From positions 124,001 to 188,000 of IMG/VR virus record IMGVR_UViG_3300037042_006844: a DNA stretch of 64,000 nt; one strand, written 5' to 3'. Positions 4,143 through 64,000 of the stretch are shown here, piece by piece. The notes under the pieces were generated by a model. It was not told where the DNA came from and made no database searches. It saw only the letters and a program-made list of their open reading frames with translations. The stretch's first letter is position 1; every line of letters starts with the position of its first letter. Both the position numbers and the translations under genes were made by a program.

Positions 4143-5781
4143 GTGTTGACCGCGAACATGTTGCAGTGTTTGCAGGCATATACTGAGTCGTCTGTTTATT
4201 TTTTTGGATTATTGCTATAAACTCTTGATGATCAAACACTTGCGAATTTATATACTCCCCGGCATATTGAGTCTATATAAACGCCGCTTTGCGTTGCATT
4301 GCTGCAATCATAACCTGTTTGCTTATGTATTGAAAACATTGGGGTTTTTACACTTTTACCATATGTCTGACTCGATTTGCAATGCAGCAATCATAACCTG
4401 TTTACTTATGTATTGAAAATGCAGCCGCTAGAGTCTCGCTTGACCTTTTTATAAACGAGTGTAAAATGGGTTTATGTGGTGGTCAGTGAACATAGACCCA
4501 GTTTAATATAGCAATTCTCAGTCTATATCGGTTAGGCAAGCACCATATTGAGTGCATACTGGTTTCCAGCATAGCATATGAGCATCAATTCAGTCTATAT
4601 GCATAGTTCCTCGACATACTGAGTCTATAACGCTGCAACTCAACATAGACTCGATCATCAGATACACTCATTATAGCATGGCACTATAAGCGCAACTGAG
4701 CCTATCCATTGAAACAACAACGCCGCAACTCAATATGCATTGGAAATTCCGAAAAAAATTTTTTTGAACTCGACAAAAATCCAAAAAACAGTTTTGGTAA
4801 TAGACATACATAATAGACCAGCAGAATTTCTAATAGTTGTGGCGACCTCTTTACCATACACTGTGTGTAGTGTCAAGTTATAAGAATTTGTATAATAATT
4901 CGGTCAACTCCCTGAAAAATAAACAGCCCTGCTCCAGCACCTACCATATATACAGACACCACACAGCACCACATCATGAGCATATACCCACACACTGCAA
5001 AAATGCTCAGGAACACAGCAAAAATATGCAAAAAAGCCAATGAAATCAGGGGTTTGCGCTAAAAATGGACGTTATTCTTCATAGTTAGTCTACTTTTATT
5101 CATGTGCATTCTATACCCCCTAGTAGATATACAACCCTTCTTACCATCAATAATCTGCATATTATTATTGCTATTAATTCCAGTTTACTCCATATATACA
5201 ATTTCGTCACCCCTCTGTTGAGCTTTTTGCAAAATGACCCGGGGGCCTGTTTCAAATTATGAGGGGGGGGGGGTTCCTCTCATACGCAGGGGGGCCTGTT
5301 GAGCCTCTTTGCGGATGTTAAGCTCTCTCTAGGCTTATGATATGTTGAGCTTCCCATATATGTTGAGCCTCTTTGCGGATGTTGAGCTTAGGCATATATT
5401 GAGCTTAGGCTTAGGCATATATGTTGAGCCTTTTTGCGGATGTTGAGCTTAGGGGCTCTTATGATATGTTGAGTTGTTGGTGTTGGTGTTGCTGCAAGGG
5501 TCTGAGCTTTTTGCAAAATGACCCGGGGCCTGTTAAGCTCTCTCTCTCTTAGGCTTATATGATATGAGGGGGGGGGTCTGTTGTGGAGCCCCCACCTATG
5601 GGGAGGGGTTTGATGTCTGAGCTTGAAGCTACCTATACACTCTCTCTCTCTCCTAAGCTCTCTCTGTCTCTCTATCTCTTATGAGATGAGCCTATGTGTG
5701 TGAAACTGAAATGATGAGTGGCACAGGCAATGCTATACATATTGGTATTTTATATTTTGGTGATGTGTTGACCGCGAACAT
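4143..5781. repeat. gene-free repeat-rich region bounded by 17-bp direct repeat (candidate origin or genome terminus)
   Basis: gtgttgaccgcgaacat at 4143 and 5765; 33-bp duplicate at 4304/4387; TGTTGAGC iterations 5216-5538; G11, G9 and (CT)n tracts. Confidence 0.75.
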
Positions 5782-20967: not shown

Positions 20968-21315
20968 GTCAACAACCCCTAGGCTAAAGCCATAGGGGCT
21001 TGAAAGACACCGAGCTTTCTCAGTGATTTACATTCATTTGGCGAATTGACTGTCGCCTGCCCATCAAGTATGTTTCCATACGAGACGGGAAGTTTGGAAC
21101 GATTTCCTATGTTCCGTGCAGCATTTAAGTCTGCATCATACACAATCCCACTCTTCGCATAAAACCTACAACCTCTACGCACACCCTCTTTGATACCACT
21201 AAAACTATCAATTTGAGAAGTGTAAGCAGGGCTAACTAGAATAACATTTTTTCCAATGTTTTCTGCCTTGTAAGTTAATATTCTGCGAAGTTCAAATAAT
21301 GGAACTTGTGCTATA
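20968..21315 (-). mobile_element. tnpB: truncated IS200/IS605 element, tnpB 3' remnant
   Basis: LTYKA..G..V..V.PAYTSQ, DADLNAARNI; end gtcaacaacccctaggctaaagccataggggc. Confidence 0.85.
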
Positions 21316-23408: not shown

Positions 23409-24685
23409 GTCAATTGACACACGACCCTAAAGGGTCGGTGCTTGCCAGAGAAGAACCTCTGACGATTGGTTGATTGACAGCAACCTGTCCATCGAGTGCG
23501 GAGCACGAGATGGAGTGTTCTTTGTCATATCTAAAAGTGATATTGTTCGCAGCATTTAGGTCTGCGTCCAATACGACTTTATCAAGTCCATAATACCTAC
23601 ATCCTTTACGGACTCCGTTATCAAGACCACGATGGTCTAATTGGGATGTCCAGTGCGGATTAACGATGACCACTTGTTTTCCAAGTGATGCTGCCTTGTA
23701 GGTCAATATGTTCCTGAGAAGGAAATATGGCATTTGTGAATTGCGATTATTAAATCTTCGTCCTTTGAACTTGGATTTAATCTTGGTCAAATCCTCAATC
23801 ACAATGGTATTTGCCTTTGTGGTGAGAAGATGATTTACAACATTGTGTATGTAGTTCTTTGAAAAATGGTGTTCACGTCTGCGGAGTTTGGTTTGCTTAA
23901 CTCTGGTAGAATGTGATTTGTGAGATTGGAGTTTTCTCTTGTTCCAACGTATCTTACGTTTGGTTCGGTTAAACTCATTGCCTTTGATGATAATGCCTTC
24001 ACTGGTAGAAGCAAGTCGTTTGAGTCCCAAATCAACTCCAATACATTTTTTGTTGTCTTGGAATGTTGTGGTATCGTCAAATACAATAGAGAGGAACACT
24101 CTATCGTCTCTTACAAAAAGAGAAGGGTCTTTGAGTTTGTATTTTGAAAATAATTCGTTGACCTTATTATACTTGAGAAGTTTGGCAGTGATACGACCAT
24201 TACAAGTTGTCAGTTTAATGGCGTCTTGACCAATCCAAGTATAGATGCGAGTGTCCAGTTGGATGTTTAGTCGGTTTGTCTCAACTGGTTCTGTGATTTT
24301 ATGGCAATTGGAACGAAGAGATTTGTATTTTGCAACCACGTCTTGTTCTGCCTTAATGACAAACTGACTTGGAAGCATTGGAAGTTGTTCTCGAACCATC
24401 TTATAACATCTTTGGTGAAGAGGCATAAGACCATTACAGGACTTCATTCCAAATCGGATTTTAGATATGATATTGAAAGCATCACGTTTCAACGATAGTG
24501 ATTTGATGAGAGATTGTTTATCCTCATCATTTTCAAAAATCAGTTGAACATTGTATGTTTTCATTATTACTGGATATACATATTGTGAAGAAACAGAAAA
24601 CAACAAACTATTTTGAGAAAGTGAGATATTTTCGTTGCTCCTCCCCTACCCTAAAGGGATAGGGGTTTCCGCAACGAGTGAGAAT
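23409..24685 (-). mobile_element. IS200/IS605-family tnpB-only element
   Basis: end hairpins gaccctaaagggtc and cccctaccctaaagggatagggg; lies between promoter 23375-23402 and RNA ligase ATG. Confidence 0.85.
23410..24564 (-). CDS. tnpB: TnpB RNA-guided nuclease lacking the CxxC Zn finger
   Basis: RuvC GVDLG, IEDL, DADLNAA. Confidence 0.9.
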   Translation of the reverse strand: MKTYNVQLIFENDEDKQSLIKSLSLKRDAFNIISKIRFGMKSCNGLMPLHQRCYKMVREQLPMLPSQFVIKAEQDVVAKYKSLRSNCHKITEPVETNRLNIQLDTRIYTWIGQDAIKLTTCNGRITAKLLKYNKVNELFSKYKLKDPSLFVRDDRVFLSIVFDDTTTFQDNKKCIGVDLGLKRLASTSEGIIIKGNEFNRTKRKIRWNKRKLQSHKSHSTRVKQTKLRRREHHFSKNYIHNVVNHLLTTKANTIVIEDLTKIKSKFKGRRFNNRNSQMPYFLLRNILTYKAASLGKQVVIVNPHWTSQLDHRGLDNGVRKGCRYYGLDKVVLDADLNAANNITFRYDKEHSISCSALDGQVAVNQPIVRGSSLASTDPLGSCVN

Positions 24686-59405: not shown

Positions 59406-60706
59406 ATGAACTACCCACCTGCTAAAGCAGGTGGGTTTCCACCGCAATAGTTATGAGTTTCTATCGGGTAGTTCCTACCCGTATTAAACGTTGTCTTTGG
59501 AAATGAGAAGTCCAAGATATTCTTGGCAGCATTCACATCTCTATCGTGTTTCTCATTACAATCTGGGCAAGTCCATTCTCTATCATTTAATGTAAGAGAA
59601 TGATTAACATATCCACAATGAGAACACGTCTTACTGGATGGTTCAAATCTACCTATTTTTAGGAAGTTCTTACCATACCAGTCGCTTTTATATTGGAGCA
59701 TATTTACAAATTTTCCCCAAGCATAATCTCCTATGAGTTTATTAGTTGGTGAATAGTTGTTCTTCTGCATCCCCCGAATGGTTAAATCCTCAATACAGAT
59801 ATTACCAATTTGGTTATCATTGGTTAGTTTGTATGAGAGTTTATCCAAGAAATCTTTGCGTTGTCTTGTTATTTTAGAATGGAGTTTGGTTATCTGCTCT
59901 TGCTTGGAGATATGAGCAGTAGAACCTTTAGTGAGTTGCTCCAAATCCTGTTGGTGTTTAGTAAGTTTATCAGCAGATTGTTTCAATACCTTCGGGTTCT
60001 CAATCTTTGTTCCATCATTCAGAGTAAGAAATGTTTTTACTCCAAAATCTATTCCTATTGCTTTATCCTTTTTTGGTGTTGGTTTCTTTGATAGTTCTTT
60101 TTCAACCTCTACAAGAATGGAAACATAGTATCGTTTATCTCTGTCTTGGGATACGATTGCTTGTTTAATCGTTCCTTCTGCTTGTCGGTCAAAGATACAT
60201 TTAATGCCTCCACGAAACTTTGGAATGACTAATCGCTTTCCATCATAGTTCAACTTAATGTTGTTATTAGTCATTGGGACAACGAACGATTTACGAGCAT
60301 ACTTCTTCGACTTAAACTTTGGAAATCCAGCATTGGAACGAAAGAAGGAAGTATATGCTCTATCCAAGTTGAGGATGGATTGCTGTAGCGATTGAGAACC
60401 TATCTCACTCAACCATTCATTTGTCTTTTTCAACTTTGGAAGTTCAGTTGCCATATCCTGCCAGTTCAATGTTTTCTTGGTTTCTTTGTAATGCTTAATC
60501 TTTACTTCAAGGAAATGGTTGTATATCCATCGGCAGTGTCCAAAATGCTTGGACAAAAGAACCTCTTGTTCCTTGGTAGGATATATTCTGTATTTGTAAG
60601 CAACGTTATACATTCTACAACATACATATCATTCACTTTCTAAAAACGATTAATTATTTTTCAATGGGTCGCATTCATCCCATATGGGGTTTCTGCTCCC
60701 TCAAAG
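59406..60706 (-). mobile_element. IS200/IS605-family tnpB-only element
   Basis: right-end hairpin acccacctgctaaagcaggtgggt; shortened left-end hairpin at 60665-60706. Confidence 0.88.
59411..60613 (-). CDS. tnpB: TnpB RNA-guided nuclease
   Basis: AYKYRIYP HTH, GIDFG, IEDL, CSHC/CPDC, DRDVNAA. Confidence 0.95.
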   Translation of the reverse strand: MYNVAYKYRIYPTKEQEVLLSKHFGHCRWIYNHFLEVKIKHYKETKKTLNWQDMATELPKLKKTNEWLSEIGSQSLQQSILNLDRAYTSFFRSNAGFPKFKSKKYARKSFVVPMTNNNIKLNYDGKRLVIPKFRGGIKCIFDRQAEGTIKQAIVSQDRDKRYYVSILVEVEKELSKKPTPKKDKAIGIDFGVKTFLTLNDGTKIENPKVLKQSADKLTKHQQDLEQLTKGSTAHISKQEQITKLHSKITRQRKDFLDKLSYKLTNDNQIGNICIEDLTIRGMQKNNYSPTNKLIGDYAWGKFVNMLQYKSDWYGKNFLKIGRFEPSSKTCSHCGYVNHSLTLNDREWTCPDCNEKHDRDVNAAKNILDFSFPKTTFNTGRNYPIETHNYCGGNPPALAGG

Positions 60707-62596: not shown

Positions 62597-63721
62597 TTAT
62601 ACAGCAACGTCCATTTTGATTGTTGGATGCGAACCATAATCGATCAGTTTTATGTCGTCATACTTGAAATCAAACAAAGATTTGATTTCGGGATTCAGCC
62701 GCAATTCTGGCAGCTTCATTGGCTCACGTAGCAGTTGCTCCTTAACACCATCCATATGGTTAACATAGATATGCAAATCTCCATATGTGTGAGTGAACAC
62801 ACCTGGCACCATGTTGACAACGTGGGCAACCATAGCGGTCAGTAAACAATATGATGTTATGTTAAAAGGAACTCCGAGTCCCAAATCACAGCTGCGTTGG
62901 TAGAGCAAACAATTCAAACGGCGGTTTGGAATATCCATTACATCAAACAATTCAATCATTTTGGTCTCGGGTTCAGCAATCAAATCGCCACCCTTAGCCA
63001 AATATAATTGAAAACGTTCATCGTAGGTCAATTCTTCTGTATGAAACTGAAACAAACAATGACATGGCGGGAGAGCGCAATGATCAACCCAATAGGGATG
63101 CCATGACGACACAATCATTCTTCTGTCGTCGGGGTTAGTTTTGAGTTTGTCCACGACCTTTTTGAGTTGGTCAACTATCCCTTCCATTGGATGATAAAAC
63201 TTTTGCTCGCCACCGTTTGGGTTTGGGACTTCCCGCTCATAGAAATAGGGAAATGCTCTCCACATTCCTCCATAAGTTCCTTCACCAAGTTCGCCAAACT
63301 GTTTTGCGAAATTCACATCTTCTTTTATCTTTTGAACAAACTCGTCTTGAGTATACGGATTTGCACTACGACATCCAGATAGTCTGGTTCCATAAATACT
63401 TATCCTGCCGCCTGCGGTCTCAAACCACTTTTTGTATTTTGCATACGCCCATTCATCCCAGATTCGAACGTCGTTGTCCACAAAGTATTTGATGTTGGTG
63501 TTGCCGCTGATAAACCAAAGCAATTCGTGGACGATTGCCCGAAAATAAACCTTTTTTGTAGTTAAAATCGGAAATGCCTCCAAATTCACATCAAACTTGG
63601 CTTGAGCACCGAAGACCCCAAGGGTATCAATGCCAGTGCGATTTTTTTTGAGCCGCCCATTTGTTAATACGTTATTCAGCAGCTTAAAATATTCGGCATC
63701 TACGTTATTAATGTTGTTCAT
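62597..63721 (-). CDS. thyA: thymidylate synthase
   Basis: RTG, PILTTK, ELLWF, IWDEW, LPPCH, YQRSCD..LGVPFN, HIY.NH. Confidence 0.97.
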   Translation of the reverse strand: MNNINNVDAEYFKLLNNVLTNGRLKKNRTGIDTLGVFGAQAKFDVNLEAFPILTTKKVYFRAIVHELLWFISGNTNIKYFVDNDVRIWDEWAYAKYKKWFETAGGRISIYGTRLSGCRSANPYTQDEFVQKIKEDVNFAKQFGELGEGTYGGMWRAFPYFYEREVPNPNGGEQKFYHPMEGIVDQLKKVVDKLKTNPDDRRMIVSSWHPYWVDHCALPPCHCLFQFHTEELTYDERFQLYLAKGGDLIAEPETKMIELFDVMDIPNRRLNCLLYQRSCDLGLGVPFNITSYCLLTAMVAHVVNMVPGVFTHTYGDLHIYVNHMDGVKEQLLREPMKLPELRLNPEIKSLFDFKYDDIKLIDYGSHPTIKMDVAV

Positions 63722-63732
63722 AGTTACCATTT

Positions 63733-63999
63733 TTATTGTTTTTTATGACAATTGGTTTTTTGAACACTAGGAACTATAAATTCCTTGCTTGCAACATTCC
63801 AATAGAAACCATTTCTATTTCGTTGCTGCAATCGTTCTTGCTTCGTTATCGGCACAAGATTGAAAGACAAATTCAAAGAAGCATTCAAATCTGCGTCAAG
63901 TTCACATTGACATTTCCCACATTTGAATCTCTTACTTTTACGGTTATCCTTCCGAGTCCAACCACATGACGAACATCTTTGACTTGTATATGTTGGATT
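63733..63999 (-). CDS. tnpB: TnpB C-terminus (partial; not in ORF track)
   Basis: manual translation NPTYTSQRCSSCG...FKCGKC...DADLNASLNL. Confidence 0.85.
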   Translation of the reverse strand, partial: NPTYTSQRCSSCGWTRKDNRKSKRFKCGKCQCELDADLNASLNLSFNLVPITKQERLQQRNRNGFYWNVASKEFIVPSVQKTNCHKKQ

Positions 64000-64000
64000 T

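Follow-up and report, generated by a model that had tools for sequence, protein, structure and literature searches.

The last gene of the stretch of phage DNA studied here reads as tnpB and stops close to the start of thyA. We asked to what kind of element this gene belongs, where the element ends, and to which DNA its nuclease would be guided. The window, 64,000 nucleotides long, comprises bases 124001-188000 of one 303,564-bp virus contig with a G+C content of 41%, which IMG/VR classes as linear and for which CheckV estimates a completeness of 89%. A complete IS607-type transposon, whose tail occupies the window's final 280 bases, lies between a Sir2 gene (upstream) and thyA (downstream) in this 304-kb freshwater phage genome. 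The adjoining DNA, including that beyond the window end, is numbered as L001 (L001 position = window position minus 60000); positions past the window end are also given as window equivalents.

Gene content and family of the element

The minus-strand frame 63733-63999 is open to the window end and supplies the final 88 codons of a TnpB that is 408 aa long. The residues encoded in the window (...PTYTSQRCSSCGW-(12 aa)-FKCGKCQCELDADLNASLNL...) comprise a CxxC...CxxC zinc finger and, after it, the RuvC-III motif DADLNAS. The frame ends in TAA (63735-63733), beyond which the sequence reads aaATGgtaactATGaac; the interval between this stop and the thyA ATG at 63721 is 11 nt (63732-63722). The initial annotation, made from the window alone, had described a TnpB zinc finger and RuvC-III with a stop at 63733, 11 nt before that ATG, and extension to the 408-aa ORF confirmed it. 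It had also proposed inspecting the adjacent DNA for the N-terminus and a serine recombinase, and its reading depended on RuvC residues being present upstream. The complete TnpB and a 196-aa TnpA were found there, and in an alignment with two relatives the RuvC triad is intact, with D209 (GIDIGQ), E279 (NRENIK) and D357 (DADLNAS) all present. TnpB matched Pfam PF07282 (Cas12f1-like TNB) with an E value of 5.5e-19; it scored 82.6 bits against the NCBIfam guided_TnpB model, under the cut-off of 100, and 23 bits against the NCBIfam IS607_TnpB model, which has a cut-off of 350.

The partner gene, tnpA, encodes a 196-aa serine transposase (L001:4931-5521, minus strand) and overlaps the tnpB start by 29 nt. 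It lies 931 nt past the window end, and the earlier remark that the window holds no tnpA was true. TnpA scored 171.9 bits against the NCBIfam equivalog NF033518 (transpos_IS607; cut-off 110), matched Pfam Resolvase at E 1.2e-17, and matched the catalytic domains of the IS607-family TnpAs of ISC1926 and IS1535 (PDB 6DGC/6DGB) at E 3e-27 and 2e-24, respectively. Its YARVSS sequence aligns with the catalytic-serine motif of the solved IS607-family TnpA structures, and its product is the only serine recombinase in the whole genome. The equivalog score, the Resolvase domain and the structure matches together identify an IS607-family transposase. By transposase, gene layout and mobility (see below), the element belongs to the IS607 family and is complete, rather than a lone tnpB, which bears out the initial suggestion of a "possibly IS607-like" class.

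Since tnpB by itself cannot separate the two families, and other tnpB genes of the window carry OrfB_IS605 domains, we also considered an IS200/IS605-type or IStron-type element, marked by a Y1 transposase, subterminal hairpins or group I intron splicing. However, a search of the 303,564-bp genome for a Y1 (HUH) transposase (PF01797) gave no match, and it is a serine transposase that adjoins tnpB. Likewise, Rfam yielded neither a group I intron nor, apart from the chance match given below, anything else, and the left end leaves just ~97 nt between GTAT and the tnpA ATG. For this copy an IS200/IS605-type or IStron-type identity is already refuted, and we give it almost no weight. The termini are nevertheless unusual for the family. 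"Most" IS607 members have GG ends, a GG insertion dinucleotide and a G-rich TAM (PMC13565253); here the right end reads ...AACTAT and the left flank GTAT, with TAT shared. The two ends are not inverted copies of each other, the left starting with AGTTATAG and the right finishing with GGTAACTAT.

Four matches to PF07282 lie in the window, out of 11 across the genome; the three others in the window are ~25% identical to the TnpB studied here. The initial count of four tnpB genes in 64 kb stands for PF07282 matches, one of which is a fragment in a 150-aa frame. The further statement that all lie at gene 5' boundaries does not: the tnpB at 23410-24606 ends where a convergent ORF also ends, and few of about 60 copies of the studied lineage abut a gene start.

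Table 1. Coordinates of the features discussed, in window positions or window equivalents
Feature	Position	Strand	Evidence or remark
tnpB fragment in a 150-aa frame	21108-21293	-	PF07282
tnpB	23410-24606	-	PF07282; 3' end meets 3' end of convergent ORF
tnpB with HTH_OrfB_IS605 and OrfB_IS605 domains	59411-60613	-	PF07282
thyA, 374 aa	62597..63721	-	PF00303, E 3.8e-97; NCBIfam NF002496, 349.8 bits (cut-off 325)
Predicted guide template GAACAACATTAATAACGTAG	63700..63719	-	Third base of thyA ATG through codon 7; directly 3' of right end
Predicted omegaRNA-like scaffold	63720..63928	-	49-copy alignment and RNAalifold
Right-end terminus GTAACTAT	63720..63727	-	Final T at 63720 is the last base common to all copies
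In-frame ATG within right end, 2 nt past tnpB stop	63728..63730	-	Probably not the thyA start
3' part of tnpB	63733..64000	-	88 codons and TAA; Pfam PF07282
Whole tnpB, 408 aa	63733-64959 (L001:3733-4959)	-	ORF after extension into neighbouring DNA
Scaffold hairpin CAGGAGC/GUCCCUG	63788-63780/63774-63766	-	RNAalifold; many covarying pairs
Scaffold invariant hairpin AAUAGAA/UUCUAUU	63819-63813/63807-63801	-	RNAalifold
Scaffold long-range helix, encloses invariant hairpin	63831-63825/63795-63789	-	RNAalifold
RuvC-III motif DADLNAS, TnpB residues 355-361	63877..63897	-	Translation and alignment; catalytic D357 at 63889-63891
Zinc finger CSSC...CGKC, TnpB residues 329-350	63910..63975	-	C329/C332/C347/C350 invariant in alignment
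Scaffold 5' helix	63928-63919/63892-63883	-	Phe codon third position covaries with Leu codon third position

Ends, mobility and insertion sites

Relatives were gathered from viral contigs (3) and metagenomes (80), and about half of the 80 metagenomic relatives carry tnpA in the same tnpA-tnpB layout. In 60 of the 62 copies with enough flank, homology runs up to ...(A/T)GTAACTAT, past which the flanks are unrelated; pairs of copies that are 97-100% identical and sit at different sites diverge directly after CTAT. The element closes with the A and T of the thyA ATG (63721-63720); the G already belongs to the flank. The initial annotation was right that the gene ends 11 nt before the ATG, but the element does not end there. 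At the left end, the homology of three near-identical pairs (L035/L036, L064/L077 and L092/L105) opens exactly at GTAT. This GTAT is found 70-125 nt upstream of tnpA in all 18 tnpA-bearing copies, with no conservation further upstream. In the studied copy it lies at L001:5621-5618 (window-equivalent 65618-65621), which gives the element an extent of about 1.9 kb (window-equivalent 63720-65617).

The genome holds a second copy, c2, at the far end of the contig, with 79% nucleotide identity to the studied one. An ungapped comparison of the two loses identity at 63755, as would be seen if the right end were ~35 nt further in, with the last 7 TnpB codons being flank and the guide being read from the thyA 5' leader. 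This placement we consider extremely improbable. A gapped alignment recovers homology to ...GTAACTAT in 60 of the 62 copies, and the independent contigs also break at 63720; the loss of identity is an artefact, caused by an indel within a hairpin that varies between copies. On the gapped and family-wide alignments and the independent contigs, a boundary at 63755 was rejected.

A 2,395-nt contig from another study, of another lake metagenome, matches L001:3720-5621 with 3 differences (99.8%) and has unlike DNA on both sides, and contigs of two further studies likewise break at L001:3720. An independent copy with the same ends in unlike flanks means that the element is discrete and has moved recently; we conclude that it is mobile as a discrete unit. 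The same contigs bear on an in-frame ATG that the right end carries just past the tnpB stop (Table 1). We tried this ATG (at 63730) as an adaptation for coupled thyA translation and rejected the idea because the identical bases are present in the copy from another context; most relatives lack this ATG and have TTAG in place of ATGG.

The c2 copy offers a comparison of vacant and occupied forms. Its right flank (16 nt) recurs at the contig start, preceded by ATGTAT. The first 127 bases of the contig are repeated 904 nt from its end (1-127 = 302537-302663; L114:2037-2163); one occurrence continues into a gene upstream region and the other into the IS607 sister copy, and divergence falls exactly at the G of the vacant form versus the C of the right end. 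In the vacant form, GTAT directly abuts an exact match to the 16-nt guide, whereas the occupied form has CTAT followed by the target. As for a target-site duplication, c2 has one TAT in the vacant allele and one at the occupied right junction, the left junction being off the contig. The contig probably closes on itself, with the sample polymorphic for the c2 insertion. The 127-nt overlap resembles an assembler word length; the pair comes from one assembly and could be a true duplication. The c2 insertion lies after codon 2 (ATG TAT|) of a 288-aa zinc-finger, HNH-like ORF, for which Pfam gives weak C2H2 matches only.

Insertion at a gene start recurs in the family. The L047 copy joins a T4-baseplate-like gene at its ATG, with the junction at AT|G exactly as in the studied copy; the gene-start copies are the studied one (c1), L047 and L002, plus c2 at codon 2, of about 60. 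By a rough estimate, these 3-4 compare with roughly 0.2 expected by chance. Gene-start insertion as a rule of the family was rejected: it is over-represented, yet confined to 3-4 of about 60 copies. Elsewhere, on a phage contig, a 99.7%-conserved copy (L064:254-6125) is flanked by the genes for portal and large terminase, and the final bases of the terminase ORF overlap its right end.

The base that follows GTAT varies among copies that are otherwise 97-99.7% identical, a variation that a plain AT-core crossover model does not explain. A "TN" crossover core was tried for this base and rejected, the left and right junction bases showing no consistent match. Some relatives (L073, L074/L075, L095 and L062/L063) carry two or three extra copies of (ATG)CAACTAT within 20-60 nt past the right end, suggestive of end repeats in tandem or of what earlier insertions left behind. 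In L102 (485-1243 and 3169-3636) tnpB is split by an insert of about 1.9 kb between residues ~256 and ~248, and this insert may be a nested element.

The lineage seems to occur almost only in phage genomes. The neighbours of the metagenomic copies are phage genes (8 of 10 sampled neighbours match PHROGs), and HNH and LAGLIDADG endonuclease genes adjoin some copies. Among isolate phages nothing exceeded 30% identity, and 185,579 prokaryote species-representative genomes held one close relative, whose 1.9-kb contig had been binned into a Bacteroidetes MAG from Lake Erken. Near-identical copies were found across several lakes and sediments.

Predicted omegaRNA, guide and thyA target

We aligned the last 240 nt of 49 copies (alignment A4) and folded the alignment with RNAalifold, which returned 30 conserved pairs in four helices, 16 of them with compensatory double changes. 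In the 5' helix, the third bases of a Phe and a Leu codon that lie 39 nt apart covary (U-A 20, C-G 16, U-G 10), both sites being synonymous. Past the conserved helices come a variable terminal hairpin (ATTGT..ACAAT) and then GGTAACTAT. As a control for pairing, the 3' partner columns were slid: 94% of cells are paired in the alignment versus 33-51% with slid partners, and double-change cells number 160 versus 26-58. Column shuffles reached the observed values in 0 of 500 trials. The last ~210 nt, judged from DNA alone, are thus a conserved, covarying scaffold, and are what an omegaRNA should look like. A search of RNA-seq runs for this DNA was negative. A cmscan of L001:2400-6000 against Rfam (E<=1) gave one chance lncRNA match of 19 bits and did not match RAGATH-18, the family to which a 2026 review assigns the RNA of IS607 TnpB (PMC13565253).

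With the right end fixed at 63720, the predicted guide corresponds to thyA codons 1-7; its length of 16-20 nt is assumed from characterised TnpBs. The template in the flank reads GAACAACATTAATAAC(GTAG), and its sole exact match in the genome is the thyA site. The initial annotation had put forward the first bases of thyA as the guide, and the boundary at 63720, inside the ATG, supports that proposal through the 62 copies and the near-identical copy. It had also called thyA a classic homing target in T-even phages; this holds as an analogy only, thyA not being a recurrent target of the family.

The target gene itself is undamaged. The PPCH and DRR motifs and the asparagine of PFN are visible in the translation, by which ThyA is intact. 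ThyA homologues in 29 viral contigs begin MN[NK]VD, and the JGI gene call also starts at 63721; the ATG there is consequently the native thyA start. At 374 aa the protein is about 90-110 aa longer than bacterial ThyA, and this extra length, common to the homologues in the 29 viral contigs, marks a distinct long phage ThyA group. The gene's own leader is lost to the element. The right end supplies an A/T-rich leader of the kind the genome prefers, and translation of thyA may well continue from it. Across the whole genome, Shine-Dalgarno sequences precede 8% of gene starts versus a background of 5.6%, whereas A/T-rich leaders are preferred and T stands at -1 in 60% of gene starts. The near-absence of Shine-Dalgarno sequences and the T at -1 are compatible with a Bacteroidota-like host without proving one.

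A vacant Sir2-thyA allele was sought in several ways. Megablast against isolate phages gave no match; a Sir2 scan of the viral contigs gave nothing; the 29 ThyA-bearing viral contigs showed no synteny; an exact ThyA look-up returned occupied contigs only; and four metagenomes contained no vacant Sir2-thyA joint. As none of these searches turned up a vacant allele, the two flanks may never have been contiguous. A 72-nt stretch between the Sir2 stop and GTAT (L001:5622-5693; window-equivalent 65622-65693) is informative here. It recurs in contigs of four other metagenomes, every time with a 3-nt deletion at 5665, and in several of these (records 7, 11 and 26) the adjacent DNA is unlike the studied genome. 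Its presence in other contexts suggests that the flanks may have been joined by recombination, not by a single insertion. The stretch was also considered as a repeat of the studied genome and rejected as such, being single-copy there; a conserved leader and a small mobile module are the candidates for its nature.

The position of the guide template, which spans the thyA translation start, might also fit a different history, in which a tnpA-tnpB pair has become fixed and domesticated, is no longer mobile, and has its TnpB and omegaRNA serve the phage without reinstalling the element. TnpB would then either regulate thyA in an RNA-guided manner or be turned against competing phages, whose thyA start it would cut (marker exclusion). 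Scans between tnpB and thyA found no terminator and no above-chance promoter, performing no better than on shuffled sequence, so that the thyA transcript must pass through tnpB; furthermore, homing endonuclease genes adjoin several relatives, and the part of the literature consulted includes TnpB relatives, encoded by phages, with a role as RNA-guided regulators (TldR). On the other hand, the RuvC triad is intact, while the known regulator derivatives are inactivated, and tnpA is intact as well. A 99.8% identical copy in at least three other contexts indicates recent movement, and the closest ThyA relatives have neither GTAT nor a guide match, which leaves no competitor target in hand. We therefore regard domestication as unlikely.

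Proposed mechanism and comparison with known systems

The reading that we hold to be probable is that of an autonomous insertion sequence of the IS607 family, ~1.9 kb long, intact and recently mobile, which would home by means of a predicted GTAT TAM and a thyA guide. It builds on direct observations, namely the gene content, the ends, the mobility, the conserved RNA structure, the GTAT/CTAT asymmetry and the vacant/occupied pair of c2. From the GTAT of the left flank and the CTAT of the right end, taken with the published TGGG/TCGG logic described below, we infer a TA or AT core, GTAT as the TAM and a guide read from the right flank. In this model, TnpA would excise and insert the element via a crossover in the shared TAT (with TA or AT as the core) at a target GTAT. 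Transcription of ~210 nt of the tnpB 3' end and right end would yield an omegaRNA scaffold ending in ...AACUAU, and the first 16-20 nt of thyA, read from the flank, would serve as its guide. The TnpB-RNA complex would then cut vacant alleles in which GTAT directly precedes the thyA start. The occupied allele would be spared, since its right end presents CTAT, with discrimination at position -4. Recombination with an occupied genome would reinstall the element, amounting either to restorative homing or to homing into co-infecting relatives.

A broader proposal, which we advance tentatively and at present lean slightly against, is that a phage IS607 lineage has exchanged the GG core and its G-rich TAM for a core of TAT and a GTAT TAM, has its own scaffold unrelated to RAGATH-18, and homes among co-infecting freshwater phages, often at first codons, where the right end would restore the start context. 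The near-identical copies in lakes and sediments and the vacant/occupied pair of c2 would make RNA-guided homing between phages directly testable in natural populations, and the lineage offers a compact nuclease of 408 aa, for which GTAT is the predicted TAM, together with a new scaffold.

The closest parallel is CboIStron of Clostridium botulinum. There, the TAM TGGG stands on the left flank and TCGG ends the right end; TnpB separates the two, cutting the vacant joint and sparing the occupied one, and retention of the element depends on TnpB (bioRxiv 10.1101/2023.11.20.567912). Both systems have a serine TnpA directly upstream of tnpB and an omegaRNA scaffold, predicted in our case, that takes in the 3' end of tnpB and extends no further than the right end. 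In both, the TAM and the right-end 4-mer differ by a single G/C (TGGG/TCGG there, GTAT/CTAT here), and excision, which is scarless in CboIStron (bioRxiv 10.1101/2023.11.20.567912), would be so here too. The crossover core of the CboIStron TnpA is GG, and dinucleotide-swap experiments on it gave unexpected junctions (bioRxiv 10.1101/2023.11.20.567912). In contrast, our element has a predicted TAT-type core (TA or AT), its discriminating base is predicted at -4 rather than -3, it has no group I intron, it resides in a phage genome, and its TnpB has low sequence similarity to that of CboIStron.

ISXfa1, an IS607 element of Xylella fastidiosa, behaves much like CboIStron. Its reRNA, ~150 nt long, continues beyond the right end, and its boundary has invariable core nucleotides that form part of the scaffold; in these respects it resembles what is predicted for the present element (PMC10711439). 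It differs in its GG core, its GGG TAM and its location on a bacterial chromosome. The IS607/TnpB systems of the cited literature are GG-ended with G-rich TAMs; the lineage described here would keep the same self/non-self logic with an A/T-rich 4-nt motif, and would broaden the known co-evolution of serine transposases and TnpB.

The TnpB of ISDra2 (PDB 8EXA/8H1J), an IS200/IS605 element, is likewise an RNA-guided RuvC nuclease with a zinc finger and also has 408 aa; it matches ours at E 4e-7 over residues 243-366. It differs in having a Y1 partner, movement as single-stranded DNA and the TAM TTGAT.

Finally, the homing endonucleases of T-even phages, such as I-TevI in td, are selfish nucleases at a nucleotide-metabolism gene of a large phage, and they spread by cutting vacant alleles during co-infection; the element studied here would be expected to do likewise. 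This manner of spread is also described in a review (PMC13565253). Unlike those endonucleases, our element is predicted to find its target with an RNA guide and a 4-nt motif, and it sits upstream of the ORF, not within it.
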